From Tubulanus polymorphus (taxonomy: Eukaryota; Animalia; Nemertea): a DNA stretch of 64,000 nucleotides. The translations under genes were made by a program, and so were the position numbers. This document shows, piece by piece, positions 3,401-63,604 of this stretch. Positions within the stretch are counted from its first letter, which is position 1. Every line of letters starts with the position of its first letter. The stretch is from positions 21,908,210 to 21,972,209 of the forward strand of contig NC_134030.1 in assembly GCF_964204645.1 (NCBI RefSeq), written 5' to 3'. The notes below the pieces were generated by a model. The model worked only from the letters and a program-made list of their open reading frames with translations. It did not search any database and was not told the DNA's origin.

Positions 3401-6400
3401 TTCGATGTGCTGTAAAGGAGAACCTTACGTTTCCAGAACCTCAGCAATTTAATCAAATCATTGTTCATTGTAAGTATCAGTTTCTTTTTCGAATTCGAGA
3501 AATAAATAGTTTTCCCTGCAACAATACAGACCCCAGTGGTAGTGCAGACCTATCCACACATATAGCATGTCACAATGTTACCATGCTAAGCAGGAACATG
3601 ACAGAGTCTCGCGATGTCATCAGGTTCGAATCCCTGCCGAGGGAGGAACGTGGAAGAGTCTCACAATGTCATCAGGTTCGAATCCCTGCCGAGGGAGGAA
3701 CATGGCAGAGTCTCACGATGTCATCAGGTTCGAATCCCTGCCGAGGGAGGAACGTGGCAGAGTCTCAGGATGTCATCAGGTTCGAATCCCTGCCGAGGGA
3801 GGAACGTGGCAGAGTCTCATGATGTCATCAGGTTCGAATCCCTGCCGAGGGAGGAACGTGGCAGAGTCTCAGGATGTCATCAGGTTCGAATCCCTGCCGA
3901 GGGAGGAACGTGGCAGAGTCTCGCGATGTCATCAGGTTCGAATCCCTGCGAGGGAGGAACGTGGCAGAGTCTCACGATGTCATCAGGTTCGAATCCCTAC
4001 TGAGAGAAGATGGGTCTACTATGACAGGGCTTAAGAACTGTGCTAGGTCAGATATAACTTTTACTAATGTTTTGTTTGTTTTTCAATCAGATTTTGCTGC
4101 ACCAGTTTGCAAGAAATCCAGTGAAAATAAAACAAATGCAGCGTATATTGTAACAATTAATAGTTACCCATTGACTCAACAAGTTACATGTGACCCTCCA
4201 GCTGTCGTTCAAAAACTATCAAACTATCAGTGGAATATAACGATACCTATCGTAAATAGTACCACAACTGACTATAGAGGGCAGTGTTTGGCTGACGGTA
4301 TTAATGAAAGGGTCATTAATGTCACTGGTTATCATCACGCCGGTCCAACTGATGAACCAGGTAAGATTCCGGGTCACAACTGGGTAAAATGATTTAATTC
4401 CATGAAACATGATAAAACTCGAGGCCATCATCTCTTAACTCGAAATCATTTCTACACAATCAAAAAATTTACTTACGAAAGTCGTTATTTTGATAAATTG
4501 TCACAAAATAACCTATTAATATATTTCATAGTCTCAATTTACTAAGTCGTATGTCGTCACATTACTGGAGTTGTCTCTATCATTGGGTCTCATTTTACTA
4601 GGTGTAAGTCGTCATTCATTTGAGTCGTCACAATTCGTATTCGAATCAGCCACCAGTATTTTACCTAACCTGTAACTCAATTAGATTAGTCAGTACAGCG
4701 GATGAGTCTTATGGGAAATCCGTGCGCGATGACGTATTTCTCTGTGTCGTCCGAACTGAATGTATTTTTTGTGAATATATCACATTCAAATGTTACACAA
4801 TGATTTAGCATCTTTAACTTTCTATCTTGAGGCTTGAGGCTGACCCAATCAAGGAACAATTAATTTTCTCCCATTTCAAAAACAACTTATATACTTCATT
4901 TAGAGAAAATTTGAGCTTTGAAAGTTAAGAAGCAGTTACTTTTTGCTTGACCTATTTAATTATTCAATTCAATTGCTGTTGTTTTTATCAATAGTTACAA
5001 TGGAACTATTTCTAGCTTTATATAATTCAATTCAATCGCATCACTGATTTGTTTAAATTTCAGTTCCAGAAGAAGGGACTGGGGGAATAGTGTTTGCTGT
5101 AATCAGTATACTGATATTACTGATTCTGATAATACTGTTTATAATGTGTCTTTGTGGCTGCTGTAAGTTTTACCTAAAACGATCATTTGATCTGAAAAAC
5201 AATGATAAACAAACTGCAGAATCAGAATACTGTGTTATTTCTAATTGACAGTGCGGTGCAGAAAACCTGATGATGAACTGTGTAGATGTGGAAATTGTAA
5301 GTTATGTAATTATTCAAATAAAGAATGCTAGAAATTGAAAATAGTGCATAAGGCCGGATGGATTCTAGAGCCCTAAGATAACCAGATACAGTTGATCCTC
5401 AATTATCTGTCCACATTTTTAAGCCGGGACCCTAGTTGCGCAGTATCATTCAAAAAGTGTTCGTAAACTATTAATCTGGTCTTAAGTTGTTAGTTCGGCT
5501 ACAAAACTAAAACTGTCTTAAACTGGCCTTGAATGTTAGCCATCACTGTGCACATTACAAAACATTTAGTTGAAACACACAATAAAATGATGTTATCTGC
5601 AATCGTAGATTTTCCCCTGACAAAACCGGTCTCGATAACTGAGAGTTCATGAGGTCTGAAATCAGTCACACTTCTAGATTATGCTTAAAATTGCATACAT
5701 GGGCTTAAAGAAACAACACAATTTTGTGTGCTTGCGTTTGACAAAAGATGACGATTCAAAAAATGATTGTATTGTTTTTTTTTTGTTTTCAGCACTGAAT
5801 TTCAATAGTATAAGCCGTGAACTAATGATTTGTAATTGTCGCACCGAGGACTCGTCGGACGATGAACTATGTGTTTGTTGTTGCTGTAAGTGTCATAGAA
5901 AAATACCATCGTAGAATCATAGAAAGGAAAATCAAAAATTAGAATAATTTGTTTGTTTGTTTTTAGTGACTTGCAAATTACACGCTGCCGATGAATCTGA
6001 TAATGAGGATGACTCCTCAGATGAACTGTGTCATTGTTGTTGCTGTGAGTTCTATAAAATGACCTTTTTGAAAGTGATAAAGATCATTTGTCAATCACGG
6101 AAGAATAAACTTATTTTTTTAAAATTTTCTATTTGCAGTGCTGTGGAGAAGTGAGCCGTCTAGATGTAATTACTGAAAGTTTTATTAACATTGAAAACAT
6201 TGATGATTAATCCTGCAAAATTAACTGTTATTGTCATTGGATATTCACGAATTCAAGAATGTTTGGAACTTAGAAGAACAGAATGTTATCATTTCTGGGA
6301 TTCAGCGCGGGTTGGGTCGTAGTTTCAGATGGCTGCAAACATGAAATGTTGCTACGACCAAACATTCTTCGGTTCATTAAAAATCATTTTGATAGAAACC

Positions 6401-9400
6401 GCCGCCATAGGTTTTCTTAGCCTCCAGGAGAAGCTACTATGTAACATCGTTCTCTTCACAAATCCATTTTATAATGTTTAGCATCATTCAACTTTCAATC
6501 AATTTTCTAGACACAATACGCGCATTATTCAGACCAGAATTTAGGTGCACGAGACGCATTAAAAATCTAAAGCCAGAATATGCATAACGTTTATTTATTT
6601 TCGTCTGACATCGATCACTTTCAGATCTGAATCAGTGCGGTCTAAATAAACCGTCATTTTTATATCTATTGCACAATGCAGCATTAATCAAATTATATAA
6701 TGGCTAATCAGTAGCGAATGAATTACTCGTAGATGCACTGTCTTGGGTACAGGCTCGATACAAGTCACTGCGGGGTCACAAATCAACGTTGATAGGTTAA
6801 GATTACTTGCCGACGTAGGTTCTCCATTTTTCTCGTTGGGAAGTATCGTTAAGTTGTTGGGTGACGATAGTAATAAATTATCACATATGCCCACCGGGTA
6901 TCGGTAATGAAAACTTGCGTCCGGTTCCTTGTCCCAGTTACCATTTATTGCGAACTAGAAGAAATTCTGTGAATTCTGGAATTCCGTGATTCCGAAATAG
7001 TACCGGTTTAAACTCCGGTCAAGTTACGCAGTATCATTGGTTCAATTGTCTCATGGCATTAGTATCCATGACTATCTTTAGTGGGTGGCTCCATGAATAT
7101 CCAAATCACACTGTTTCTTTATTGGGTTGATTTGTCAGGTGAACGTGCATCGTGTAAATAAACAGTATTTCTGTTTTCTAATTTACAGTACCGTGTTTGG
7201 GTCCGAAATATAAAGATGTGATTGAATTGTTGCGTTGGACAAGTGAAACCTGGTATGAAAAAGGTAAGATTCTCTCACATGATTTACTGCACATATTCTC
7301 AGATATCGGTTTGATAATTTTAGGTGTTGTTTTCTCTTTGTAGATCATGAGAATTGGGTGAAAACACGTGACCAACTGCAGCCAGGTATTTATAGAAGTA
7401 TTAACCCTTTATTGCAGGAACACGTTGAAAATCTTTCATGAATACAGTTCATACGTAAAATGCGGCAATAGAGGATTCCCATTGAAAATAAACTATACGC
7501 GAGAAACGTTTTTAGATGTCGTCTTTTTTCATGTTTATCTGTAGCTAATATTTGTGTTGTTTGTTTAACAGTTAAAACTGGAGACTTTGAGACAATTGAC
7601 AGTTTCAGTCCAGGTATATTAGATATTTATTGTGATTTCATTTCAATCAAACAATATAAACTCAGATAATTCATCGACAAATCAACTACTTGCTCGTAAC
7701 GTCGATGAATTCATTTAAAAAAATCAATTTATCGTAAATTTTTCTTTCTAGAAATTGTTAGAATAATTGTCGATGTTTACGGAACTGAGAATGATTGGGA
7801 GATAACGAGAGATACGGATAAACAAGGTAAGAGGAGTGATGACTCAGTTGCCAGGGTAAGTGTCAAACCGGCTGAATGGTTTGTTGCAACCCGGGGCCGG
7901 GTTTATAGACTGGTATTAACTTTAAACCCGGGGTTAGTTTAATTAATTTTCAATTAAGTTAGCCCCGGGTTAAAGATAATACCAGTCTATAAAACCGGGT
8001 CCTGCATACAATACTGTACCGGAATATAACACTTCCCCGGGCCTCCTATCTTCATCCAGCAGTAATTCAAACTGTTTGATGCTCAGTTTATTTGACTATT
8101 GAATAAATGCTTTCTATATTTCATTTCAGCAAAAGCTATCAGAGAATTCCTGTTTGGACAATTATCAAGTGATCCAAGTAAGTTATTGTTTACCTATAGT
8201 TAAAGTGTTAGTTAAAGTTATGTACATGCACATGAGTGTTATGTGAACATGCACATGTGAGTTCAGTTGACATGTGCACATGTGAGTTATATTTACATGT
8301 TCATGTTATTATTACGTATACATATGAGTAATACATGCATGTACATGTGAACATGTGCATGTGAGTTTACCTGCGATGTGTTTTAATTTTAAGTAGAGTT
8401 TGGTCAGTTTTCATACATTTCCAGGTTTGTTAGATTTGGTGAAAGAAATTCTAAGTAAGTTCACGAAATGACTCAATATTTCCTCTTCAACTCGAATCAT
8501 CGATTCAAATGTGTTTATAATTATCTATTGACAGGAAAATACGCGAGAATAAACAATTTAAAAATGAAACTATCAAATGAGATCGGTAAGAGTTGATTGA
8601 ATACAGTTATTGATTTATGAGTTTATTGATTATTATTCTACTGTCAACTCATTTTGTAAATGTATTACAGATACATTACTGAACAAGAAGAGGTCAATGG
8701 ATGGCGCTGATGCAGTTTATAATAGAGATGAAGGTACCGTTATTATTGACTGTTCAAATGAAATATTCAGCTTTGCTGATAGAAATGTGGCGAATTCTAT
8801 TCAACATGGCCGCATGGCAGCCTTTTGGCAATAATCTATATATCTGATAGAAGCGACCAGTTGACAATTTGTAATAATTCAGTGTGTTATTTCGTGAAAT
8901 GGAAAGTTAATCTAATGCCATTTTTGCCTCAATTCGTACCGTTTTTGCCAAATTGGATGCATCAAAATTTGAGATGAAAATTTCATCTTAAAGATATCAG
9001 ACTAAAGCTTCAGATATACTGAAGTTACAACAAAATAATCAGATTTACACAATCCAGACCAAAAAAAAACTAATTGAGAAATAAGATGTGATACAAACTA
9101 TGGGTAATGATACAACATGAAACAAAATTTCAAATCTATTTTTTCCGTGTTTCAGATGAAGTTCATGTTAGTTTTATGACGCAATTGAATGAAGAGAAAA
9201 GACCCCTGACAAACAAAAAGAAACAGTTCACCAGAGATGGTCAGTAAAACTATGAATTCTATCTCTGAGTTCAATTTTCACATGTAGTTGACTACACGGG
9301 TTACCAAGGAGTCTTAAAAAGTGTTTAAAGAACTTACTGACAATAATGGCTAACTTTTTGGAAAAAGGTCTTCCGCATTTTTCAAGTTTTATACAGATGT

Positions 9401-12400
9401 CTGTTAGTAATAAGATAAAATCCCACTATTTACAGATTAAAAGAATTTAAAAACAAGAATTTATTTATTAAATCTAAAATATTTAAAAGACACGACGTTT
9501 CGATCTCACCCTAGAGATCATCGTCAGGTGTGTGAAATAGACTTAAAACAGGGGTATATATACAGAGGGGGACAGGTTAATTGAGTAAATTGGTGAGTGA
9601 GTAAATAATTAGTGTTTGGCAAGGCATGAAGTAATATACTTAGAAAGAAGGGAATTATGCGGAGAAAAGCCATTATTTAAATTGGTACTAATATCTGAGT
9701 GACGAGTAATTAGGGCAGACTCAACTATGTGGCGTTTAGTGTAATTGCTGGAAGTATAAATAATTTCGGCTTTATCAAAATTAAAACGATGACCAGTGTT
9801 CCAAACGTGATTGGCTACGCCACTTGCCGGTTTTTGATTTATTATATCCTTTTTGTGTTCCGAAATTCGAGTTTTTAAATCACGACCAGTTTCTCCAAAG
9901 TAAATTTTATCACAGCCAAAACAAGGAATTTTGTAAACTCCGCAGTCCAAAGGTTTAGATGGAGAAACTGGTCGTGATTTAAAAACTCGAATTTCGGAAG
10001 TAATGATTAGTCATGTAGTGACCGTGGTTCAGTGATTCATTGTGTCACCAATATTTAGGATTTATCTGTATTTATCGATTTTCAAAATAAAACGAGCGAC
10101 AAAAGAGCAACTGCTCTGCGTGAATCACATTCAGCTTTTTTGTCAGTTTCAAATCCCCAGTAAACGGTTATAATGAATTTCTATATTTTCAGTTGCTTCA
10201 GCAGTTGAATCTATTGTTGATTTGTTTGCTAAAATGTCCGGTAGGTTCCATAATTCATTTCAGTAAAAATACTGTGAAGTTTGTTGTGGAATCATTGAAT
10301 AATTGATTGTGTTTATTTTTACTGTAGATGCTGAATTATGTGAACGGGGAATATCCAACATAAAACGTAGGTTTTAATTCTCATTTTATCCTCAACTCTT
10401 TATAAATACATGTGCTCTATAATCTACCGTACATGTGCATTTTCTCTGTACGTGTACATGTCAGTTCTATATACACATACATGTTAGTTCTCTGTACATG
10501 TACAATACTGAAGTATTTGTAAATTCTGTGGTAAATACTTTTTCGTTATATTTCAGCAACTGTTGAAATTGCTGGTAAGTTATGATATTCACTATGATGT
10601 TTAAACTGGTGCTGAGTCTGTTCAATTATAACTGAAATATCGCTGTATCTTTTTATAGAAATGTTTGTAAAAGAAACACTTCAAACAGAAGTTAAACAAC
10701 AGAATGGTGAGTGTTTAGTTAATCTAGGAATCTATCAGGGGGGGGGGGTTACAACTATAAACTGATTACAAATTAAACATATTTTCTCTAATTACAGAAA
10801 ACCTCGTCACACAAATAGAAAACCAGAAAGTAACTGATAGAACAAAGATAGGTTTGTTACACGATAAACTGATTATCATAATTTATCCATAAATTATTCA
10901 GATGTTGTCAATATTAAACTATTTACCGGTACTAAAAAAGTGTAGATACAAATTTATCCTGCAACAGTGAATAATAGAAACTATCTTTATGGTTGGTATT
11001 ACAGAAATGGGAGTGGCCGACCTGAACCGTTCTGTGAGCAAAGATATCTGTGGTAAGACTGAAAATGTTATTCTTTTCTTATTTTTTACGTTTATTACAA
11101 ATCGTTTCGTTAATGAGAAATCCGAAGTACAATAAAACCAGCTGGACCCGTACCGGTGATGTGGAACAATTGGTAACTTTGTCGAAATTCATCTGCTCTG
11201 TGGGAAATTTAAGGTTTTATAAAACCCGGTTAATCCAGATGTATTTTGGTGAAATTCTAGTTTGAACTGATCTGGTCAATATTCATAATCATCCGGAAAT
11301 ACGGAGCGAACATTTGGAACCGATAAAATTCATCCGCTTTGAGTGAAACTCGAACTTTTATGAAATCCAGATGTACTTGGATGAAATTCTAGTTTGAACT
11401 GATCTGGTCAATATTTATGTTATTCTATTCATGTATTCATTTGTAGAATCAGTTTTATTGGCGTCAAGTTTGCAGAAATTAGAAGAGAACAAAAATTCGA
11501 CAGAACTAGATAAAAGTAAGTGTAAACTTTCTTTGTCCCTCGAAAAACTAAATTCACAGAGTATTTGATGACCATGAATTGAAGATGAAATTTATTGATG
11601 TCAGCAGCAGATCGTCCTAGGCATCTGTTTTGATTCAGAGCCAAGTTTTAAGTGGTGTTAAACTAAGAATGTATCTAAGAGACAGTTTGTATCGATGTGA
11701 ATAATCTTTTGACTATGTTTTTCATCAGTTGTTAACAGTTGTTAGAAAGTAACGCAGTATCATTGTTTCAAGTGTCTGCTTAAAATCAATCATAGCTTGA
11801 ACAAACCAGGTTTCGACTGTCATGCATATTAGATTCCAATCGGTTGGCTCCGAGAAAATCCAAATTACATCATCATTAGAGGATGGCTCCGGGTGGACGT
11901 GACATCCACTCTAAAATGTCCAATTACTGGGAAATTAGTTTCTGTTTTGTTAATTTAGTTGTTCATCTGTTTTCAGGTATTTATGAAATAAGTCGAGATG
12001 TTTTAGGTAAGAACTAAATATAGCGATATACCAAGCAATAAATCGAGAAATAATATCGAGGTCTTGGGTCGAAAGATACGGAAACGTCCTAGGGACATAA
12101 TTAATTTTTTAATATTTTTTCTGATTGAAAAATCATAAAATTAAGTAGAAATTCGATTCTTTATTAAATGTTATATTTTTTCGATCGGTCAAAAAGGAAA
12201 AAATAAATATTCCGTGAAAAAATGTCGGAATTAAATCAACGCTGGTCGAAATAACATTTAATAAAAAATCGATTTTTTATTTAATTTTATAATTTTTCAA
12301 TCAGCAAAAAAATAGGAAAATTTATTATGTCCCCAGGACGCTTCCGTAGAAAGCAAGACGCTCTAAAAGAAATTATCAGTTGACAAATTGTAAATGATAT

Positions 12401-15400
12401 TTTCTAGTTGTTTTTCGTGATTTTCTGTTTAAACAAAAACTTGTTGCATTGAATTTATTTTAAATGTTTGAGTAGATGAAAAAGGAAGCCTCGATGTTGC
12501 TGGATGCAGATGTTGTGATGTAATCATAAATGATTTCTTTTTTCAGAAATTAAATTGAAAATCGCAGTTTTCAAATCTATCAAAGGTAAGAGGTTTATGT
12601 ATGGAATATACATCAGAATCAGCAGGGTTTATTCCATCATATTCCAAGATTCAACCTGAGCTCAATCATTTTCCAAGAACTCAATTGTAGAATTTTACGC
12701 TGAACGAGCTGAAAGATTTCAGAAAGAACTCGAAGAGAAACTGAAACAAGAGGAAAATGAAGAGAGAAAAAATGAGGAGGAATTGAACAGAATGATTCAC
12801 AGTTCAGTTGGTCAGGCGTTTAAATATATCACTGATATAAATGAAAGTAAATATCCATTTTGTATCTCAAATTATACACACATGTGGCAAAGTACATACA
12901 CATAAAATGATTATGTTTACACATGTTACATGCACATGTGCACAAACACGTAACATGTACATGTGCATTATATTCGAAATGTTCTACGCACAATGTATTT
13001 TTACATGTTTCATGTAGAGTCGAATGATAAAACATGTTTATTGATGTAACAGTGATTTTCATCGCGATTTGTGTGAGAAGGACTGAATTATGGCGGATGG
13101 GATAAATCACTCACTGGTTTTCCCGAGCCTTAGAGTTCACTGGTACCAGAATTCAGCCGTTCCAAAGAACTCTAAAAGACACTGGGGAAGAATTTATCAG
13201 AACTTTAAACTGATAGTAAAAGAGTTTATTTTACGAACGTCGTCTTCTCTCTAAGAGCATGCATGCATAGGACATTTTACAGAATGGCGCCCGAAACCGA
13301 CATAAACCCACTCAGCCCCTGCTCACATTTCATGTGAATGTACGTACATGTCACATGTGAACATGTTACATGTGAACATGTAATGAATTAATGTACTTGT
13401 AACATGTTCATGTAAATTAATGCACATGTAACATGTTGGTTCTCTGATAAATTTCAGAAAATCTTATGGATAATAAAGTTGTAGGATATGGAGGTTTGTA
13501 TATAATTCACATGTTTCAATCACAAACCAGTTTTTATCATGAATAATCTGTTTGATTTTCTCTATTTATATTTCAGCAAGTCCAGAAGAGATAAGTGAGT
13601 TCTGATTTATATTTATAAATATTCTCAGTACAGTAGACTGCGCGCTTGCCTTTATTTCATGTTGTAATTTGTCATATTTACAAGTTTATAAGTTACTTGT
13701 GATGTCAGTGATTTTCTATATTGATAGATTCTAAACTACATGAATTAGCCGATAAAGAGTTTGAAGATAGGAAAGGTACTGTACACATTACAAAGTTATA
13801 CATTTTTAGCCTACTTCGGGCTAAAGTCCCAGCGGGCTATTGCGTTCACTTATCGTCCGTCGTCCGTAGACGGAATCCAGTTATTTTGGGAAGTTTTGAA
13901 GACGCTTCTTTGAATTGTTTTGATATTGGATTTATACATGTATCTACCCTAGACACATCTTCGGCCCAAAAACTGGCCCTGTTAGTCAAGATGGTCGAAT
14001 GGCGGCCATTTCTGCGTTTCTCGCCGTTTTGAAGTTCTAAAGGCAAATTTAGGTTCTATCTCAACTATTTATAATCTGTTTGTAAACGGCCATAAAAGCT
14101 TCGTGTTTCGTCTGCAATTCACTGCAAATAGTTATATTTTACTACGTATGCCAATCTATATGTTTTAGACTGATGTACACTCGTTTGATCCACTCAATCG
14201 TAACAGTTCCTCAGCTTCACTTCGTCATTATCATTTATTAACTTCGCCATATCACATCATATACTTACATTGTGCCTCGAAACACTAAGAACTGAAATAA
14301 TGGAAATGTATGCACAGCCAAAATACTGAAGTGCGGCCATTTTTGCTTTCTGCTGCTTTGCGTAAATCCCTTAATTGCGTGGAGTGGGGCCAATACGTCC
14401 AGTAGACCAATAGAACTAGTCCACTGGACCAGTACCAATACAGCTTCTCCTAAATGCGTAACACTGTGATCTTTTTGTGCCCAACAAATTAACTTTGCCC
14501 TGAATTCCGAAACTGTAGCTTCCGATTGGTTGTCATTTATCACTGAAATTCGTGTTGGGTACTGCGTGATGTGTTTACTTTGAAAAGGGATCTTAAACAT
14601 ATCAGACCGGGTTTTCCGATAAGTTGATGTTGAATCGAATAATGAAATTTTCTGATTGTTGAGCATTTCAAATCACTTCCCAACCGGGTGTGGTGTCCCT
14701 GGAACCCTAGTTTTATGTTTTAAATCTTATTGATGTTTATTATCAATGTTTATTACAGTCGGTTACTTCAATACTTTAAAGACACCTGAAGAAATATTGC
14801 CTCTAACACTGAATATACCGACACAACTCCGCACCGGTAAGTGACTACCCTGAAACTGTATGTTTGTTATTCAGATTGTAATAATTGTAATAAATTGTGA
14901 TAATTTTGTTTGGAATTCAACACTAGACTCTGCCTTAAATGAGTTGAGAATCAGGCAAATCCGTTTATCATTATTTCCAAAACTTTTATTCTCTTCGAAT
15001 TTCATTTAATTTTTGTAGAGTTGGATTCAGCTGGCCGGGATCCAGTTATTCTGTCGGATCGAGCAGGTATTGTATAAGTCTGTTAATCTAACCTGTTCAA
15101 TGCCACTGATCTCTTATAACGCCTACTTTTTTCCCAGTGAACAAATCCCGTAAATCTGACTTAAATTCAAAGGAAATACCATTCTTCATAACGCCATTTC
15201 ATCAGTGGCATAAGGAAGGACTTTTACTGTGAAAACTAAATTTTCAGCTTCCTAGGAGCACCAGCCTGAAATATTCTGCAACTGATCTTTGTCCCCGTTT
15301 AGATGATTAACTCTTCTAAGTTCTTGTTAAAAATCCTTAAACTGCGGTATTCGTTAGGAATACCAGAAAATGCTCTTCTATCATATGCCGGATGTTTAGG

Positions 15401-18400
15401 AACAGACCCTGAACACGATGTTCTAATCCCCTGCTTTACTGGTCTTTTAAATGTCCAGCGGAACTGAATGTCTTTAAACAACAAAAGTTTAGAATTGAAA
15501 CCGCACTCAATGAATGTTGTGTCTATGTTTTTTTGTTTTATATGAATTTCAGTGGAATATTTCAAGGATGAATTCATTATTGCAATACAATCTGATGAAT
15601 CATTGAAAACTGCTACTCAAACTGCTTTAGATAACAGTAAGTTACATCTACAGTAAACTACATTTACATCTACAGTAAACTACATTTACATCTACAGTAA
15701 ACTAGATTTACATCTACAGTAAACTACATTTACATCTACAGTAAACTACATTTACATCTACAGTAAACTACATTTACATCTACAGTAAACTACATTTACA
15801 TCTACAGTAAACTACATTTACATCTACAGTAAACTACATTTACATCTACACTAAACTACATTTACATCTACAGTAAACTACATATAATACATCTATACAT
15901 CAACAATTATATATTTATTCACTAAAATTGTCGTTTCTTGAAATGTTTTTCCTTTTTTTAGACTCAAGCAGAACCATTTATTTGCTGAAGAGAGAAAACT
16001 GGAAAGGTAAATTGTTTGATGAAATGTGTGTACAATGTATATTTTCTAAAATCAAAAAATAAATATTTTAAGAACCGCAAATTACTTGTTTATTTTAATC
16101 ACTTCTATGAATTCATATAAACTGCTGATTTTACTGTGTAAAATAATAATTCAACGATTTTCTTCTATTTTCAGTTGTTGATAGAATTTATAATGATGTG
16201 AAATCCAGAATACAATCAATTTCTACAGGTTTGTATTTCAAACGATACGCTATCAATCCTTGTATTAAAATGTAACCGTATTCTCCCCCGGGCAAGCGCC
16301 CTTTTTGTGACCCACATCATATCATGTCAATGTATCATATATCATGTATCATATATCAGCCGGTATGTACATCTGTATAACGGTTTATTCCCATTTCGCC
16401 GCTTATTTATTCCAATTTGGCCTTTTTCCCAATTTCACCCCTTTCCTATTTTGCCCCTTTCCTATTTCGTCCCTTTGTTCACATTTTCGCCTCTTTTTGT
16501 ACATTTTCGATGAAGTTTAGTTTAATTTTCGGAGGGGCTGAAAAAAATGGTAAGGGTGAAATTTGAAAGGAGCGAAATGGAAAGGGGCTAAATGGGAAAG
16601 GGGTCTACTAGGAAGGGCAGACATCTTGTATATCAACACGCACGTCGCATGCACGCACGTCGCACGCACGCACGCAAACGTCCTTAATCATATTACGTTT
16701 ATGTCATTTATGCTTGTAAAATGTAATTTCGAAGTTGATTAACTTCATTTTATTTTTCATCACGGATTGATTCGTTGCTGAATTTACGTTCTATTTCTAT
16801 TTGTGATTTCAGAGGAATTAAATGAACGAGGAATCGTAGCTTATAGAAGTGAGTAAAATGCGTGTTTGAATTATTCGTCAATTCAACAGTGTTGAGTTAC
16901 CCTAAACTCCTTAAACATCAGCAGAAATGAATACTCGTGTAAAAAATAAATCTATAAAAGTAATTTTTGAAAGATGATAAAAGCGTTTAGTCGCAATGAT
17001 ATTCTACAAATGAATAAGATTTAAAGAAATTCAGATTTAAGATGAAAAGACTATAGTTATATAGATAAAGTAAACTGTATTAATTAACCTGTATATATAT
17101 ATATATGTTTTCTGTTTTTCAGTAAAAGATGAAATAGCGAGTAAGTACTGATATCAACTTACACATTAGAGTGAATGATAGCGATTCTCATATAGCTCCT
17201 AACTCCAGTAAACAGTTCAGGGTAACTTGAAATGCTGCTCGAAATGCTGTCTTAAAAAGGAAACATTTCAGAGGCTTCCCAAATTCATCAATGGATAAAA
17301 TTGCCCGTGGAGGCTTCAGGGGTGGATCGAGCCTAGGTTTCTGTGAGTACCGCTCAACTATGGAAGGGTAAGCCTACCTTTATCATAACCCAATTACGGT
17401 ACTCCCTCAGAAAATCGTGAAGTTTTGTAGGAAATATTCATAAAAGAAATAAGAAGTTGACCATTTTCCATTATTCGAATTAACCATTTCTATTACTACT
17501 ACCAGAATACTAGCTGGGAATATAACATACATGTCTGTACAAGTCAATCCCTGATCAAATTCAAATCAACTCATCGATAATAACTCGCTTGCCAGGGGTA
17601 ATTTCTTCCTGTTAAAACGAGATTTCCACGAGGAACTTGAAAAATAGAAGGGTTGTTCTACAAACTGTAGGCTGGATCCACCCCTGGGCGGCTTGTTCCA
17701 CAATTTGGGGCACTACATGTACTATTACTCTTCATGGTTCGTAGTATTTGACTCGCAGTGGCTTTCGACTTAAATGAATAAATCTGTGAAGATGGAAAAA
17801 CTTTCCTGATTGATCTTCGATATCGCGGTTTATTTATAAATCAGTACAATCAATATTCAATCTCTTGTTTATCGACTTGATTTGTAGATGTGAAAGTAGA
17901 ACATGTTTCACTCCCCCTGCAGTAATCTATTGTGTTTATTCTGTTACAGTGAATCACATCAAACCAATTATTGCAAACAGAATTCCAATATATAAAGGTG
18001 AATACATTGTGTTGACTGTTAAGTGTTTTAGTAAACTAGCAAAGAACCGGCCGTCCTGAACGGGTTTTATCGTCCTTGAGTTTGAGTTGATTATTTTGCT
18101 TCTTGTGTGGAATACACAGTTATTTCGCGTAAGGTCGACTGTATTTTGTAGGAGGATATTGTGACGCTATAGCAACATAAATAGTTTACATCAGTTGACA
18201 TTACGATAGTTTCTAAATTAATCTTTGCTCCTCATTAGTTACATTTTAACATTTATAATTACAGGCACACTAGTGACTGTTTTAGAAGAGAAATGTAAAA
18301 AGGCTTCCAGTTGGATATTCAAGAACTGGGTTTATGATATATCTACTGCGAGTAAGTTCACAGTGAAATCAGTTTGTGATTTATAATAGAATTCTATTGT

Positions 18401-21400
18401 GTAAAAACTTGTCTATTGTTTATTACATATAGTGTCTGTACTCAGTGAATTTACAAGTAGAACTTTAAAGACAAACACAGGTTATTGGAAACAAGTCAAA
18501 GAATGTTTCGGTAAATAATAAATTCTTGTTCACCGAACGTTTTATTAAATGATCTGATTTTTATGTTTTGAATAATAATTGTTTGTTCTGTTTGAATAGG
18601 AGATGAAATTAACAGTGAAACAAATACAACTAAACTGAAAAAAATAGGTGAATATTTTTAAAAATTCAGACAAAATTATAGCGTTGAATTCATTAAAGAT
18701 GAAATTCATCAATTTAATCGGATCTTCGGAGGCATCTGTTTTGATTCAGGTCCATGTTTTAAGTGTGAAACTTAAAGTGTTTGATAGCTGCCACTCTTTG
18801 GTCACGTTTTGTACCGATGTGAAAATGTCTTTATTTATTTGTTTATAGTTGATGAATGTTTGAGTGAATGCAGTAAAACAATGAATGATAAATGGATTAC
18901 TGGTGAGTACCCCTCATGAGTGAGTACCTTTTTCGCTAACGCCACGCAACACAATTTTCATCGCAAATCCTCCCGTAAATATTATTCACTAAAATCCGCG
19001 CAAATATTTTCCTCACAAATTGCTCAATTTTTCCCTCAAATCTGCGTGCACAACTAAGAGGCACCCCTTAACTCTCATTTACCACGCAAATAATACTTTC
19101 TTGGCTTTTGAAAGTTAAATAACGTAAATAATTGATATTTTTCAAGGTGCGGTCTGATGGACCAGTACCTTACCAAATTTTTCTGGGGCTCAACTTGGAT
19201 TCATTGTTAATTATATTTAAGACCCTTTTCACCGATATATCAGCCCTATGCTGGCCGGCATCCATCGTTATATCACGTATACGGAATTATTTTTTCAAGA
19301 AAAGACTTTTAAGAATGAATTAAATATTAGTTTATTCTCGATACCAAAATCATTAAATCGATGATAAGTTAAGAACGGTACAGCGTCCATTCCCCATAAT
19401 GAATAATGAATATTGGAATGTTATGTTAATTTAAATATAATAAATATTCTTTTGATAATAATCAAGTACAAATTGTTTTCAATGAGGGCACCTCAAGAAT
19501 CCAGATATGGTGACGGTGAATAAGATATCGACGCAAATATCAATTTGCAATTAGTTTTTACTATGAATACCTTTTATGATTGGACTGGTTCCCGTTGCGT
19601 GAAAAATTGAAAAAATCACATCTTGCGATGAGTTTATCTCAAACTGATTTTCATCGCAAATCGTCTCGCAACGCAAATCATCCACGCAAACTTGCGTAAA
19701 GTTAGTGAATAATGTCCCCGGTACCTGAATTGTGTGAAGACATTTAAATGATGTGATTCATTGATGAAGTTGAAACCAGCAGTATACTAAACCAGGTTGA
19801 ATGACTAGTTTTCTGTGAGCTTGAATTTCATGTATTGATATTTTTAGACGATTTCAAGATCCGCAACATGATTGTAGAGACAGGTAAATATTAGTAGAAT
19901 AGTCAGAACTGATGACGTGGAGAAATATAGTAAGTTTATATAAAACCCACTATATACAAAGTCTTTAGAAGATTAAAAATGCGAAATTTATCTATCAAAA
20001 ATTAAAATCAAAGGACTCAACTTTTCGAATTTTCACTAGACATCAACTCAGGTCTAACGTTGATCTCTAGCGACAGATCGAAACGTTTTGTCCTTTAATT
20101 TTAATTTTTGGTAGATATCGTATAACTCTGAATTACGAATTTATTTACACTCCAACCATTCCCATGGTGTATGGAGGAAAAAACAGTATTTACATAAATA
20201 CAAAAAAAACCAGAAAATAATAGTATTTTAAAACATGACAAACGTTATTTACAACATACTATTTACACACACTACCGGAGGGATCTATATACATCCAGAC
20301 CTAATTCGATAAATTTAGCCAGATTTTTTGAAATATTAAGGTATCAACAACGTATTTGAATTTAAGTAGTTTTCACGGAATTCGGTTAGTAAGTTAAAGT
20401 AAAAAATAAAATGTAGTTCGTCTAATAAAACGTTTTAGGGGGGGGGGGGCATAATATATCGGTTCTTGGTAAATAAAGATTTGAAAATTCATTCACAGGT
20501 AAAAGATAAGATCCAAATCCAGAATTCAAATAAACGTCATCAAGCTGATTGATATAGTTATCAAATTTAGATATCCTTCTTATATTACCTAGGATTAATG
20601 TATAAGGAGTTATTATTTAGCCTAAAATTGTCCCTGTGTGTGCCGGTCACGGAGTATACGGTGTAATTGTTTTATAGATGATCTAGAGTTTACCATGAAT
20701 TGTTGTGTCCAGATATACGACAAACCACAGTCATCTAAAATCTTCTAAAAAAATAATAGCCAGAGACTCTTAGCAATAATCTTTAAAATACAAATTCAAA
20801 ATATTTTGTAGAGAATTGAACTAGGTTTAGTTTGTTCACACGAAATCGTTTTAACTCAAAGATTAATCATTCTAGGCTTTACAATGTAGGAACAATGCCA
20901 GGGGAATTAAGGTAAAATAGTAAATATAAGTACAAGCTTAGGGTAATATACAACATTAAATCAGCACATTTTTTAAGAAATGTCAAGAAATGGAAACTTA
21001 GGGGTACTAAAATACAACCAAATACAACCAAATACAATAGTTAGTTGCAAATAGAAAGAGATCATTGATAAAATGATTGATGATTAATACATTCAACTTA
21101 AATCAATGTATGTTGATAACTTGTATACAGATTTCCTTCTGTGGCATTTTTACCGGTGGCATTTTTTCCTATGTTTCCTATTTTTTCCTAGAAGTTTCAA
21201 AAGTTTCTAATTGACGTGTCTAAATTCGAAATAGTTTCGCGAAGTTCAGTAAGAAGGGTGCAATCAAAGAGAAAATGTTAATCATCCCTGAAAACATCGC
21301 AAATTGGGCACATTCTTTCATTTCTAGGTAGATGGAGATTAGGTAAATTGTCCCCGGAAAAAATGTTCAATTTATAAGGTCTAACTCACATACATTTCGG

Positions 21401-24400
21401 AACTTGCTACATTCTAGTTTTACTTCGCACAAAAACTTATATTTTCGTTTTATCGACATTTACAGTGAGGTGGCGGCACAGTATTCAAATAAAGCTTTTA
21501 AGTGTAATTGTAGTGATCTCTCATCCTCAGCAAGAATGACCTTGTCATCCGCATATAGAATAAGAAATAAATTGAGTAAAGCGTCAATATCCTGATTACA
21601 TCCGGAGTTCAGATTCTCTATAAACGATTAAGTTTTAAAATAGTCCTCAATATCATTCAGGAATAAAGAAAAATTAAGAATAGGTGACTGATGTTCATCT
21701 TGTGTTGTCCTTCAGCCTAGTACTGCCACCTGGTGACTGTATGAGATGTAACTATTCTGTTATTTGTATTATAGTAGAGATTGTTGATGAGATAAAACAC
21801 GTACATTTTCAAACTCCCGAATTTAGAAGTAAGTTTCCAATAAAATCAGAACCTGTTTTAACAACCAGAACTCAAATATTAATATCTGTATGTATTGTAT
21901 TATTATTTATAGGATCAGTTGTGACTGCAGTGAATGAAGCTATCGAGAAATCAGGTAATTGAATATTCATCATAAGTTCGAATTCTGTGTTTGAATTGAG
22001 TTCAGTTTGGCTGAAGGTGCTTTTTCAAAATGTATATACTTATATTTTACAGAAAAATCACAACACGGCAAAAAACAATGCTATGAAGCTGCAGGTTTGT
22101 AAAACTCTAATTTCTGTAAATGAATTTGACCTGATGTGGCTGCTACACAGGACCGAATATCATAGATTAGGGGGCAAAATATTCCCCTGGACCCAGTTTT
22201 ATAGACTGGTATCTTTAACACGGGAGTTAACTTAATTGAAAATGAATCAAGTTAGCCTCCAGGTTAAAGATAATACCAGTCTATAAAACCGACCCCTTGG
22301 CCCTGGAAACTTTTTGAAAATTGTCAGTAGTTAACATAGTTTCTCAATGTTGCTATGGTGGTTGTCACTCTTGTTGAGGATTTTCCCCAAGAGGATCATC
22401 CATTTATTACGTCTGCAACAAATTCAGAAAAAGCCTCGAGTATGCTGATAATAGTTAGATCGAGTCCATTATGTATAAAAAGGGTGGTAGAAAATGTAGT
22501 CACGTGATAAAATTCATCCTGAACAGAATTGAATTTTTTTAAGTTGCGTACAATACGCATTACTATTTACCCCTCCCCCTTTTGTACACAAAAGTATGCA
22601 ATTTAATAAGACCCCCTTAATTGTACAATTTGAATTTTGAGTTTAACCCCTTCCTACCCACAATGCGTACCTAATTAGTGGATGAGCCCTTAAGGGGTAA
22701 CTTTGAACCCGCCCTATGAAACTAGGCCCATGATGATGACCACAAAGATGAGGTAATTTTCAGTTGCTTTCCCTTAAGGATTTTATTCTATTATTTCAGT
22801 GAAATGGATAGCTGATAAAATGAAAGGTAAATTGACTGATAATAATACTCAGTTTCGTGATGAATTTGTGTTGATGTTTACAGAATCATTTCTAATTTCA
22901 GATTTTAAGGTTAAACCATCTGAAACATCATATGGTATGTAATATAATTGTTAAATACAGTTGATTATAACGGTCGCTGTCATCGTTTTTACTGTCACTG
23001 TTCACTCAACACGAACATTTATCAGAGAACAAATATGTAAAATCAAACTCAAATTCAATGAAAATACCATTCTTTAAAACGCCAAAATCATTGTGATGTC
23101 ATATTTTTCATTGGTCGCCATAGTGGCTTAAAGGACTTGCGTATATCTTGTGTGGGTGCCTCATCTGTCAGCCAACTGGGCGGGAAATTGATTTAACAAT
23201 TCACTAAAAATCCTGGCATTTTTTTCAGAGCGAAATGAATTTACTAAACTTGCACGAGAAAAAGGTAATGAATAAATGATGTGTATTAAAATTGATGTTA
23301 TCGATTTTGATAATGTTTTATGATGCTATACGTAATTTAATTTCTATTGCAGTAAAGAGAAAATCAAGAGAGTTGATAAATGAGATATGTGCTATAACAG
23401 ATAAAGGTAATCAATATTTACTTCTATAAACATTTTACTGACTCAATATTTCTATATTCATGAATTCATATTTCCACATTTATATATAACGTGTCTTAGG
23501 GTCCCCAAACCGGAAAATCAGGAATTTCAAAATAATGTACTTTAAATTCATTTGGCGCTTCAACTTTCTTCGGCAATCTTTCTAGAAAATCGCTTTCATC
23601 AACCGATCACCGGTAAAATGTTCTGACGTCACTGTAGTGAATGTTATCTGCTTAATTTCCATCTGGAAAATGAATAATCACCCATGAAATACTCGGGTTT
23701 ATTGACTTCATGTAATTATGGAAACTATCCATAAATTCTGTTCTGATAGGGTTCGGTTTCCTGGTAGATAGCTCATATATTGTTTTCATTTTTTTTTTCA
23801 GAAAAATTAAAATCGAAAGGTTTCCTGGTAGATGAGTCGAGTAAGTAAAATTATACAGTCATCACTTTCTGATTTAAACCATAATCAAATTACATTTTGG
23901 GATGAAATTTAGTTTCGTTTTCGTTTATGAGAAATCTGAAGTATGATTAAACCGGTTTAATCTGGATTACTAGCGGGACACCGGGATGAAATTCATGTAG
24001 TTTGAGAAATCCGGATTTAAAATCGTATTCCATGAGATACTAGTTGATTAGTTGTCGAATAAACACTATAATCCGTGTAAACTGTAGATAAATGAAGAAA
24101 TCCCACACTTCGAATTTGAAATTATACTATCAAATTTATTATTACGAAACCACAACGTTTCGGCTGTTGACTAACAGCCATCATCAGGTGGCATGGTTGA
24201 TTGTTTGATAAAGAGCAGTAACTGAATCAAATCTGGATTAAACTGATCTTGTTTCAATAAGCTTGTTTGTATTTAATGTTCTAATCTCTACTGAACAGTA
24301 TCATAAACAATGTTTGATAATATGATATGAAATCTCTCACTAAGAATAAAAAGAGTGCACAATGTTTCCTTATATTGTTTCCTAGACGTATCGGCGCCAC

Positions 24401-25780
24401 TCCGCGCGGTTGCGCCACCGCGCGGGATTAACGCGAAGCAGCAGAACACAAACATGGCCACTCTCTCAATTTTCAATTATTTCGGCTGTTAGGGATTTAA
24501 GGCACAATATAAGTTGATGATGTGATATGGCGATGTTAATTAATGATAATTCCGCAGTGAAGCTAGCCACGAACGGTGCCGATTGAGTGTACAGCTGCCA
24601 AAAACACTGAAATGTGCGTAGTTGCGTAACTATTTGCAGTGAATTGCAGACGAAACATGAAGCTTTAACGGCCGTTTAAAAAAAAATTATACCAATCGCA
24701 ATTGTAAAATAAAAATGAGATAGAACCTAAGTTAAAATTCTGGCCATTTCTAAAATGTTATTACTAATTTTTAGTCAGTGCCGAACGTTTAGTTTTCCAA
24801 CAATAATGAGGGGTGGTAGGTAGTCATGCAATTCAAGTCATCATTTATTACACGTTACTTCCGTGTTGTTGAAAATCTCGCGAGTCCTGGACTAAACCCC
24901 AATGAACAATGTGATCTGTGTGCTGGCCACAAATGTACACAGATCACACTACACTACCCATTACACACTCCAGTACCCACAGCTTTCATATATCCATCCA
25001 AATATTTAGTGGCTTTCTTCCTGGATAATATTCGTCCAACATTTCAACAATGTCATAATAGTCATCTCCAGGGTTACTGAGTGTTGCAACAACAATTATT
25101 AGGTATTGATATTTATACAATCTATTTTTTCGGTAGATCATTAAACGTCGATTCATTCATTCCTTTGTCGGAGATCTCATAAATATGTATGTGGTGTAAG
25201 GAACACTTTGGACTTAATAAAACACCCTGAAATAAATCAAAGCTAATTCTAACTGAATCAGGGGTGGAATTAGTTGAGGTATTATTAACGATTGTCACTG
25301 TTAACAGTAAAGTTGTGACTAGTTGACTTTTCAAGAGGTTGTGCATTTTATGAAACAGACTGTAGCGGGTTATATACAATTGTATAAAACCAAGCTGAAC
25401 ACATCTAAAACAGAGTAAACTCTAGGGGCTACTGATAAAGTATTGTGAATATAAGTTAAAGTTGACGGGTATCTACATTTAGGGAGTGTGCAGTTGTATT
25501 TGGTGTTTGGTTTATATTGTACATGTATTTATTTATAGAAGTTACTCGTCTGAATAATGAAACTGCTGGTGATCGTAGACCAAGTATTGACCAGACATCG
25601 AGTAGTGGCGTTGGGCCACCTGGTGGTGATATAGTGAAATATGAAAATGAACATAAAAGTGGCTGTAGTCAAAGTGCTGCTGGTGATAGTCACACTCAGA
25701 GTGCTGCTGATGATAGTCACACAAGTGATACCGTACCGAGTGGTGATCGTGAGCTGGGTAATAGTGATACACAAGTCTAG
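319..25780 (+). CDS. Gene A1: Ig-superfamily type I membrane receptor with a micro-exon-encoded cytoplasmic region (53 exons, ~1356 aa)
   Basis: Hand-spliced model; all introns GT-AG and phase 1; no stop until TAG at 25778-25780. Exons: 319-433, 1234-1524, 2017-2352, 3134-3469, 4091-4360, 5064-5162, 5252-5296, 5793-5885, 5967-6044, 6139-6150, 7189-7263, 7344-7385, 7572-7613, 7752-7826, 8130-8177, 8425-8454, 8535-8585, 8671-8733, 9156-9239, 10193-10240, 10328-10366, 10557-10574, 10659-10706, 10798-10851, 11447-11515, 11977-12006, 12547-12585, 12691-12846, 13458-13493, 13577-13594, 13728-13775, 14759-14836, 15019-15066, 15553-15636, 15962-16006, 16175-16228, 16813-16848, 17123-17140, 17950-17997, 18265-18351, 18433-18510, 18600-18647, 18849-18902, 19848-19883, 21775-21828, 21913-21954, 22053-22094, 22800-22826, 22902-22934, 23229-23264, 23353-23406, 23802-23840, 25539-25780. 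Exons 1-6 and 11-47 are conserved with their splice sites in the paralogue at 34835+. Confidence 0.8.
1070..1280 (+). repeat. 82-bp tandem repeat spanning the exon-2 acceptor (3 acceptors)
   Basis: CAG|CACCTGAT at 1070, 1152, 1234. Confidence 0.95.
1234..1524 (+). CDS. A1 exon 2: Ig-like domain 1
   Basis: 291 nt, phase 1-1; G-x-TVSITC...W...GKMYKCVA resembles the Ig B-strand and F-strand Cys motifs. Confidence 0.8.
2017..2352 (+). CDS. A1 exon 3: Ig-like domain 2
   Basis: 336 nt, phase 1-1; L-x-CTC-x-A...VKWY...IQC pattern (Cys-Trp-Cys). Confidence 0.75.
3134..3469 (+). CDS. A1 exon 4: Ig-like domain 3
   Basis: 336 nt; EGEVVEYTCRT.GRPDPTV...HNGTSFRCAV, a typical I/C2-set pattern. Confidence 0.85.
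3593..4000 (+). repeat. 52-bp minisatellite, 8 copies, containing a Pol III B-box
   Basis: Unit GGAACGTGGCAGAGTCTCACGATGTCATCAGGTTCGAATCCCTGCCGAGGGA; 3 copies in the paralogue. Confidence 0.95.
4091..4360 (+). CDS. A1 exon 5: membrane-proximal beta-rich domain (Ig/FN3-like)
   Basis: 270 nt; NSYP...VTC...WNITI...DYRGQC with several N-x-T sequons. Confidence 0.7.
5064..5162 (+). CDS. A1 exon 6: transmembrane segment
   Basis: VPEEGTGGIVFAVISILILLILIILFIMCLCGC; CAG acceptor, GTAAGT donor. Confidence 0.85.
5252..6150 (+). CDS. A1 exons 7-10: Cys-rich/acidic juxtamembrane micro-exons
   Basis: 45, 93, 78 and 12 nt exons: LRCRKPDDELCRCGN / SLNFNSISRELMICNCRTEDSSDDELCVCCC / LTCKLHAADESDNEDDSSDELCHCCC / LLWR. 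Confidence 0.7.
7189..23840 (+). CDS. A1 exons 11-52: array of 42 symmetric phase-1 micro-exons encoding a charged, probably helical cytoplasmic domain
   Basis: Exons of 18-156 nt, each with a pyrimidine tract+AG and a GT donor, all 3n and all open in the same frame. The fusion to the Ig/TM exons is inferred from phase continuity. Confidence 0.8.
7894..8002. mobile_element. ~110 bp palindromic MITE (Harbinger-like family)
   Basis: GGGCCGGGTTTATAGACTGGTATT...AATACCAGTCTATAAAACCGGGTCC; other copies at ~22189-22296, 43484-43593, 62397-62512, 63699-63809. Confidence 0.8.
9368..9999 (-). mobile_element. 5'-truncated Penelope-like retroelement (GIY-YIG endonuclease fragment) with a short inverted segment
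   Basis: ORF 9609-9950: GVYKIPC..C...YFGETGR.LKTRISEH...ESALI...LN is a PLE-type GIY-YIG; 9960-9999 is the reverse complement of ~9859-9897; absent from the paralogous A2 intron (~44866). Confidence 0.9.
9490..9531 (-). ncRNA. Minimal hammerhead ribozyme (Penelope-type)
   Basis: Minus strand ACAC-CUGACGA-U-GAUCUC(UAGGGU)GAGAUC-GAAAC-GUC-GUGU: core, stem II and stem I (ACAC/GUGU) are all present. Confidence 0.8.
12077..12348. mobile_element. ~270 bp fold-back MITE
   Basis: TACGGAAACGTCCTAGGGACATAAT...ATTATGTCCCCAGGACGCTTCCGTA, a near-complete palindrome flanked by GAAAG repeats; absent at the paralogous site ~46630. Confidence 0.85.
13803..14712 (+). mobile_element. Non-autonomous Helentron/DINE-like element
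   Basis: Starts in a T-run with TTTTAGCC..GGGCTA subterminal inverted repeats and a short (CGTC)n tract, ends in a T-run. Present here and at ~47823-48684, absent from module II (~54995); a reverse fragment lies at ~24500-24730. Family assignment is by structural resemblance. Confidence 0.65.
15642..15883 (+). repeat. 22-bp minisatellite (TTACATCTACAGTAAACTACAT) x ~11
   Basis: Begins immediately after the exon-34 donor. Confidence 0.95.
21480..21690 (-). mobile_element. Degenerate non-LTR retrotransposon RT fragment
   Basis: Minus strand reads LNLFLILYADDKVILAED..SLQ (YADD motif); copies at ~62185-62310 and ~62975-63200. Confidence 0.75.
22189..22296. mobile_element. ~110 bp palindromic MITE, same family as 7894-8002
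   Basis: TIRs TTTTATAGACTGGTAT / ATACCAGTCTATAAAA. Confidence 0.8.
24150..24191 (-). ncRNA. Minimal hammerhead ribozyme (solo Penelope-like terminus)
   Basis: Minus strand CCAC-CUGAUGA-U-GGCUGUU(AGUC)AACAGCC-GAAAC-GUU-GUGG. Confidence 0.75.
25539..25780 (+). CDS. A1 terminal exon: low-complexity S/D/G tail ending SDTQV*
   Basis: ATTTATAG acceptor, phase 1, matches ORF 25517..25780; AATAAA at 26111. Confidence 0.7.
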
Positions 25781-31300: not shown

Positions 31301-31723
31301 TCTGTTACTGTGACTGACAAACTGCACACCAGCGATCAGAAAGTTACTACAGATCCGTACGTGAATATCGAGGCCGGGAACGACAAAGACACAACTCCGT
31401 ACATGGATATGGCAGCCGCGAAGGGTAAAGATACAGCTTCATATATAGATATGGAAGCCGGGAAGGGCAAAGACACAACTCCTTATATGGATATGGGACC
31501 CGGGATAGAAGAGGATACGTACAGGAGTACTGAAACCGGGAAGGACAAACACACAACTCCTTACACGAATACCGGAGCCGAGAAGCGCAAAGATAGACAT
31601 AGTTACGTAAATACCGAAGCTGGAAAGGCGCGCCATTTGAAGAAAGATACTGATGAACCCGTGAAAGATGATGTTGAACTTTATTCTTACGCTACTGTTC
31701 AATATACTCGCAATAGGCGTTAG
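28375..31723 (+). CDS. Gene B: single-Ig type I membrane receptor with a tyrosine-motif repeat tail (~374 aa)
   Basis: Exons 28375-28474 (signal peptide MMNTRLFVIIYIVLLKLGNLNS), 29010-29330 (Ig), 30043-30082 and 30520-30562 (stalk), 30853-30962 (TM), 31213-31723 (tail). Intron phases 1,1,2,0,2 join into one ORF; the two stalk exons are the least certain. Confidence 0.8.
29010..29330 (+). CDS. Gene B Ig domain exon, paralogous to A domain 3
   Basis: Shares PDI...EY.CRT...PTVI.Q.KRR.SE.W..IPD...FKADFKLHNGT.FRC with A exon 4. Confidence 0.85.
30334..30471. mobile_element. MITE with TIRs (GTTGCACAGTC/GACTATGCAAC), flanked by CTG
   Basis: Imperfect TIRs; related copies at ~5426-5553 and ~53504-53632. 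Confidence 0.65.
30853..30962 (+). CDS. Gene B transmembrane exon
   Basis: TGPDHKPDWTMMIIYIACGVIGFLLVIVIIVVIVIC followed by RRR across the junction. Confidence 0.85.
31213..31723 (+). CDS. Gene B cytoplasmic exon with multiple Tyr motifs
   Basis: VYDEL, LYDDI, PYVNI, PYMDM x2, SYIDM, TYRST, PYTNT, SYVNT, YSYATV; ~14-aa periodicity. Confidence 0.85.

Positions 31724-34834: not shown

Positions 34835-63604
<28,770 letters not shown>

Follow-up and report, generated by a model that had tools for sequence, protein, structure and literature searches.

Receptors that join extracellular immunoglobulin (Ig) domains to an intracellular NACHT domain at the membrane are sparsely described, and the papers found concern a sea cucumber. 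AjNLRC4 of Apostichopus japonicus carries Ig domains, two transmembrane (TM) helices and an intracellular NACHT, and is devoid of LRRs (PMC8699970), while AjNLR-new is a further sea-cucumber receptor of the Ig-TM-NACHT kind (PMC13133943). The proteins P0001, P0003 and P0032 of the nemertean Tubulanus polymorphus resemble AjNLRC4, by architecture only, in possessing an extracellular Ig part, a TM helix and an intracellular NACHT; they differ from it in its second TM helix and its lack of LRRs, and the micro-exon domain presented below is not described there. The gene at the centre of this report, A1, differs further in being without the intracellular NACHT that its sister genes have.

Schistosome MEGs encode small secreted proteins from 10-20 exons and produce many isoforms (bioRxiv 10.1101/2023.06.21.545858). 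The likeness to the Tubulanus genes lies in long runs of short exons (47 symmetric exons in A1), gene-family expansion and fast evolution; the exons of A1, however, are separated by short introns (median 196 nt) and encode a cytoplasmic, predicted helical domain with no homology to MEGs. The A1 array follows a TM exon rather than forming a secreted product, TM-skipping isoforms of two paralogs being the exception, and few exon skips occur in the RefSeq models of the array genes. The Alr genes of Hydractinia form a clustered Ig-TM family with divergent, ITAM/ITIM-bearing tails and some TM-skipping isoforms (PMC9546547). In Tubulanus also, each domain has its own exon, tails diverge more than ectodomains and some isoforms skip the TM exon, but the A1 tail is far longer, micro-exonic, linked to NACHT-LRR in paralogs and without ITAM, ITIM or any sequence match to Alr.

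Dscam, likewise an Ig receptor, has numerous small, cassette-like exons arranged in mutually exclusive clusters of duplicated exons. The A1 exons, in contrast, are mostly unrelated and included in series in RefSeq, with no mutually exclusive clusters, and their variation is intracellular. Finally, CARD-only and PYD-only proteins and paired plant NLRs with integrated decoy domains illustrate that an NLR N-terminal domain may also occur without NACHT and evolve fast. Here the likeness is by analogy; A1 is membrane-anchored with an Ig ectodomain, and its tail domain is related neither to death folds nor to any known decoy. A1 thus belongs to neither the AjNLRC4-type receptors nor the MEGs, and a literature search returned no description of this Tubulanus family and no paper on nemertean NLRs.

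The A1 receptor and its transmembrane exon

The window (the whole 64,000 nt stretch analysed, C6:21908210-21972209 in contig numbering) contains two copies of a gene family whose members are all labelled 'uncharacterized' in RefSeq: A1 (LOC141907029) and A2 (LOC141906794), both on the forward strand. The A1 protein of 1377 aa (XP_074652671.1, here P0044) can be placed on the window without a single mismatched letter. Its N-terminus is the translation of a signal-peptide exon (319-433, with the ATG at 319), followed by four ectodomain exons: Ig-like domain 1 (1234-1524; weak Pfam ig match, E 0.017), a mapped, Cys-containing exon that is probably Ig-like and has no Pfam match (2017-2352), a C2-set-like Ig domain (3134-3469; weak, E 0.02) and a membrane-proximal domain placed by the P0044 mapping (4091-4360). 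A phase-1 TM exon (5064-5162) was located by both a splice-site scan and the P0044 mapping. A1 therefore has an Ig ectodomain and a TM helix, and the Ig matches, weak and confined to single exons in A1, are stronger in its paralogs (Ig_2, E 8e-5 to 5e-9). A search with one ectodomain exon retrieved only Tubulanus proteins at meaningful scores.

Four Cys-rich juxtamembrane exons follow (5252-5296, 5793-5885, 5967-6044 and 6139-6165), and 17 Cys lie within residues 471-565, which cover these exons and the end of the TM segment; they are candidate palmitoylation sites. A TGA is present at 6174-6176, and a receptor ending near 6176, with the array as a separate gene, was among the readings considered. 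This was rejected, as RefSeq joins the two and the TGA is a mutated donor: comparison with A0 and A4, where the donor is intact, reveals a GT-to-GA change, and the RefSeq model of A1 uses an upstream donor after 6165 instead. Since the TGA stems from a donor change, some truncated A1 product may also be made. The Cys-rich exons are absent or dead in A2, A3 and A6, the same three genes that lack the stop, and hence the array is the sole splice target of their TM exon. RefSeq models, on which both the joining and the isoform counts are based, have the array spliced to the TM exon in over ten paralogs. The placement of the array on the cytoplasmic side of an Ig-like receptor, as the initial annotation had it, agrees with P0044, in which the array follows the TM exon.

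A symmetric array of micro-exons

Mapping of P0044 places 47 internal exons of 18-156 nt downstream of the TM exon (2445 nt in total, mean 52), of which 30 are no longer than 51 nt, with a median tail intron of 196 nt. All 47 are multiples of three, bounded by AG and GT, and in phase 1 on both sides. The array was recovered independently by the splice-site scan, which agrees with the letter-exact RefSeq protein on the symmetric, phase-1, in-frame character of the exons that had been proposed for this gene. The earlier count of 46 exons of 12-156 nt (2382 nt) is superseded, though its mean of about 52 nt stands: a 48-nt exon at 15019-15066 had been missed, and the exon at 6139 had been ended at 6150 (12 nt), whereas RefSeq ends it at 6165 (27 nt).

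Beyond the Cys-rich exons, the array can be divided into block U0 (7189-10240; 10 exons, dN/dS ~1.2), block U1 (10328-12846; 9 exons, opening with a 39/18/48-nt triplet and closing with a 156-nt coiled-coil exon), block U2 (13458-16228; 8 exons, with a 36/18/48-nt triplet and the exon at 15019-15066), block U3 (16813-18902; 7 exons, with a 36/18/48-nt triplet) and block U4 (19848-23406; 8 exons). A last micro-exon (23802-23840), whose counterpart in P0032 and P0033 is joined to a NACHT-LRR exon, precedes the terminal exon (25539-25780), which encodes a 79-aa low-complexity tail and the stop.

Across seven paralogs (260 kb), 382 exon copies are multiples of three, open and bounded by AG and GT; 12 further matches, being shifted-acceptor, unmapped or dead copies, were set aside. 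All 18 distinct changes in exon length between these paralogs are multiples of three, as claimed initially, compared with 48 of 232 intron indels (21%). No stop was seen among the retained copies, where ~40 would be expected from ~816 inferred substitutions. Together, the length changes and the deficit of stops bear out the proposed selection on frame, and we regard the anatomy of the array as highly probable. A further observation, that no exon ends in T and that skipping would therefore be safe, holds in A1 and fails in the paralogs: in four genes the last letter of exon 39 is T, so that a TGA arises if exon 40 is skipped. Skip-safety, broken in four of seven paralogs, was consequently rejected as a selected trait.

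Relatives bearing NACHT-LRR

The array is present at 18 loci, three of which continue into a single-exon NACHT-LRR and 15 of which, A1 included, do not; the 156-nt exon likewise has 18 copies genome-wide. At least 11 of the array genes lie in a tandem cluster with a period of ~37 kb. An A-type ectodomain is combined with NACHT in P0001, P0003, P0032 and P0033 (Pfam E 3e-14 to 8e-17), while a Pfam search with A1 (P0044) gave no match, NACHT included. The NACHT-LRR occupies a single exon of ~900 codons, of which there are at least 18 open copies, and the LRR-like C-terminal region of the Tubulanus NACHT paralogs matches Pfam LRR_14 weakly (E 0.01-0.04). In P0001 and P0003, which lack the array, the same ectodomain goes with NACHT, a weakly matching HD2 and an LRR-like end; P0032 is a single protein that runs from ectodomain and TM through the micro-exon domain to NACHT-LRR; and P0033 has a partial micro-exon domain with NACHT.

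At the DNA level, copies of exon 27 are followed downstream, on the same strand, by a NACHT exon in three places: C6:22.26-22.27 Mb, C9:0.31-0.32 Mb and C19:0.03-0.05 Mb. These three loci, on three contigs, have a common short form in which exon 27 is followed by exon 36 and U2 is missing, and this recurrence argues against an annotation artefact. Block U4 is absent from P0032 and P0033. The NACHT-linked loci fall on one side of a branch with values of 99/94 for two proteins, and of only 44/77 for the three DNA loci, in an unrooted tree that does not distinguish loss from gain of NACHT. NACHT in P0032 is joined to the counterpart of A1's last micro-exon, and the A1 terminal exon occupies the position of the P0032 NACHT-LRR; the terminal and NACHT exons share ~10 bases at the acceptor, with no similarity in their flanks. 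No NACHT exon lies inside A1's own cluster (21.68-22.13 Mb).

A2 (36568-63604, running beyond the window) joins its TM exon (40270-40365) directly to 41547 and harbours a 15-exon internal duplication, with 47583-53476 repeated at 54341-60736. A5 (C6:22065389-22080150), which RefSeq splits into two genes (P0055 and P0054), has lost exons 20-43, duplicated exons 9-10 and shares the mutated donor of A1. In the NACHT-bearing P0001, P0032 and P0051, a two-exon Ig module is repeated up to four or five times and isoforms skip whole Ig modules, which places variation outside the cell in these paralogs and inside the cell in the NLR-less genes.

Block shuffling and rates of change

The 36-39/18/48-nt exon triplet recurs three times in the tail, and a related 36-39-nt exon five times. 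U1 and U3 are weakly similar (hhalign E 0.0015 over 39 columns); no other pair of blocks could be aligned with hhalign. Paralogs differ by whole blocks, with joins adjoining the recurring 36-39-nt exon (exon 43 to 29, 19 to 44, 51 to 36, 27 to 36 and 42 to 51), and by duplications of single exons. The rapid gain and loss of exons proposed for this gene is therefore visible between paralogs, in the form of blocks. Because phase 1 is uniform, blocks and terminal modules can be swapped by unequal recombination with the frame intact, and the paralogs show such frame-keeping exchange of both; the tail diversifies in the germline, via paralogs.

The dN/dS ratio is 0.97 in the tail, ~0.38 in the ectodomain and 0.35-0.65 in the NACHT exon. 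Selection was examined in seven paralogs of one assembly with our own implementation of the site models, in which a positively selected class (M2a over M1a) is favoured in U0, U2, U3 and U4 with LRT values of 27-41, compared with a maximum of 10.7 in 24 runs of a null simulated on mosaic trees for two blocks. The LRT does not clearly exceed this null for U1 (11.9) or for the ectodomain (6.9). Within the tail, 30-48% of sites are near omega 0, 4-16% are at omega 5-12, and about half fit omega = 1. The mean tail dN (0.090) equals both dS (0.092) and intron divergence (0.094), which is compatible with weak constraint too.

Structure and isoforms of the tail

The tail of ~800 residues is Glu/Lys-rich and predicted to be all-helical. 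AlphaFold models were poor (pLDDT 39 and 52), neither Foldseek nor an Atlas shape search gave a fold match, and a VIA structure comparison peaked at Z 6.9 and 7.3, which is background level. Word-index searches, limited by their length window and the need for shared words, found no homolog of the tail outside Tubulanus, and neither did ESM Atlas for the first 317 tail residues; queries were single exons or RefSeq proteins, exons being joined only for alignment and codon statistics. RHIM, ITAM and ITIM motifs are lacking in the A1 tail. Leads towards ADP-ribosyltransferase (ART)-like and GBP/Sey1-like folds were not confirmed on follow-up. As no fold or family match stands, the domain still belongs to no recognised family, as stated at the outset, and the tail is probably a helical orphan with relatives only in this species.

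RefSeq lists 1-4 proteins per gene among the readable clusters, isoforms being compared as RefSeq proteins clustered at 90%. The two isoforms of A1 have identical tails. Elsewhere, tail isoforms differ by eight skips of one or two exons in six genes and by a few shifts of 1-7 residues, and two genes show skips of the whole TM exon. The latter (P0039 and P0045; LOC141906946 and LOC141907917) skip it in frame, and would secrete the ectodomain with the micro-exon tail.

Proposed role and alternative explanations

The family possesses three architectures with a common exon anatomy, has gained and lost blocks, and keeps its frame while the amino acids change fast. Since the array stands ahead of the NACHT-LRR exon in sister genes, it occupies the N-terminal slot of a membrane NLR, and since NACHT-LRR follows it at 3 of 18 loci, A1 can be placed as an NLR-less member of an Ig-TM-NLR family. 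On balance, we favour the reading that A1 belongs, as an intact gene, to a young tandem family of type I membrane Ig-like immune receptors specific to Tubulanus, and is one of the NLR-less partners of the NLR-bearing ones. With all tail introns in phase 1, the same TM exon could be spliced to any of three kinds of inner module. The first is a NACHT-LRR on its own, in a single exon; the second, at 3 loci, is the helical micro-exon domain with NACHT-LRR behind it; and in the third, at 15 loci that include A1, a short exon with the stop comes after the micro-exon domain. The array would be spliced mostly whole, with the gene family, not isoforms, as the source of variety, and the micro-exon domain may be a non-enzymatic interaction module. 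NLR-less members such as A1 might then partner NLR-bearing receptors, either as variable sensors or baits that pass the signal on, or as dampeners; CARD-only and PYD-only proteins and paired plant NLRs provide the analogy.

A more specific proposal, which we put forward tentatively and with considerable doubt, is that the micro-exon domain represents a novel module for the N-terminal position of NLRs, evolving fast and acting inside the cell as a sensor or a homotypic adaptor, and that ~15 NLR-less surface receptors, whose tails are shuffled in different ways, signal through a few Ig-TM-NACHT-LRR proteins. If true, animals would have a counterpart of the paired sensor/helper networks of NLRs, assembled through the shuffling of phase-1 exon blocks. 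In this family, three interchangeable inner sides go with a single ectodomain, a domain of ~800 residues is an orphan, and the tail changes faster than the receptor outside, the reverse of the usual immune-receptor pattern. It also offers a compact natural test of symmetric micro-exon arrays as devices for splicing versus germline shuffling, and bears on the origin of NLR N-terminal modules.

The initial annotation had suggested a combinatorial cassette, in which the skipping of micro-exons would give many tails per gene, as in schistosome MEGs. The symmetry of all exons would permit this, the RefSeq skips in six genes and the TM-exon skips in two are of the expected kind, and rare isoforms are under-counted by RefSeq. 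Nevertheless, the tails of A1 isoforms are identical, the exons are not paralogous alternatives, predicted helices cross exon borders (with low confidence), and genomic changes mostly shift whole blocks. With skips of only one or two exons in RefSeq and skip-safety failing in four paralogs, some exon skipping is likely, yet a combinatorial repertoire is poorly supported and improbable. A somewhat less improbable, though still unlikely, alternative is a weakly constrained spacer, that is, a helical linker or scaffold kept in frame only, the NLR-less copies being by-products of duplication with little function. The equality of tail dN, dS and intron divergence, the loss of 24 exons in one copy (A5) and the half of sites that fit omega = 1 agree with it; the absence of stops, the sites near omega 0 and at omega 5-12, and the retention of the array without NACHT at 15 loci speak against it.

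Two further explanations place the function elsewhere. The tail could itself be a signalling or killing effector, for instance a degenerate ART-like or large-GTPase-stalk-like repeat, which we consider very unlikely. Exons 34-38 of some paralogs do match the N-terminal half of Pfam ADPrib_exo_Tox (PF03496), in 8 of 20 copies at E<=1 and at best with 4.4e-5 (23.3 bits, below the cut-off of 23.4), and ESM Atlas gave feature matches to the Sey1 three-helix bundle (0.93), GBP_C and GVIN1. The Pfam match, however, ends at model position ~105-117 of 196, before the catalytic half, so that the full domain with its Arg strand, STS motif and catalytic Glu is not found; A1 itself has no such match, searches with the profile recover neither a PDB ART in this register nor any of the ARTs encoded in the genome itself, and DUF1104 and globins score alike, with no fold match. 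Least probable of all is a receptor for allorecognition or adhesion in the manner of Hydractinia Alr, its specificity lying outside the cell. The clustered Ig-TM family, its one domain per exon and its divergent tails are as reported for Alr (PMC9546547), but the ectodomain is the conserved part within the seven paralogs tested, the A1 tail has no ITAM or ITIM, no homology was found, and the animal is solitary.

Neighbouring gene and other sequence features

A second gene, B (28375-31723, forward strand), includes at least a signal peptide, an Ig-like exon (29010-29330), a TM exon (~30853-30962) and a tail exon, and one copy of it lies between each pair of A genes. The tail of 169 aa holds seven YxxM/I/L/V motifs in 14-aa repeats, and its exon is 97-100% identical between copies, far more uniform than the A tails. 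In every tandem unit, gene B looks like an unvarying signalling partner.

Tandem repeats of 82 nt (1067-1290 and 35987-36615) each contain an acceptor and the first codons of the first Ig exon, with three acceptor copies in A1 and eight in A2; the acceptor of the A1 Ig-like domain 1 exon lies inside the repeat. An intronic 52-nt tandem repeat (3592-3998 and 39086-39239) includes a word resembling a tRNA B-box, although ARAGORN detected no tRNA in it, and the short A1 isoform P0028 of RefSeq starts within this repeat. A high-copy insertion in an A1 intron (9397-9999) shows very high depth in DNA read runs; it bears a reverse-strand fragment that resembles the GIY-YIG endonuclease of a Penelope-like element. 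An A2 intron contains an (ATT)n microsatellite of ~360 nt (52311-52672). Outside the window, a second ART exon (L046) is found at C6:513858, besides a locus (L045, C6:20704144-20707650) that looks like a nemertean mono-ART toxin gene: its open frame of 1977 codons has at its end Ricin-B lectin repeats and, C-terminally, an ADP-ribosyltransferase domain (PF03496, E 4e-12).
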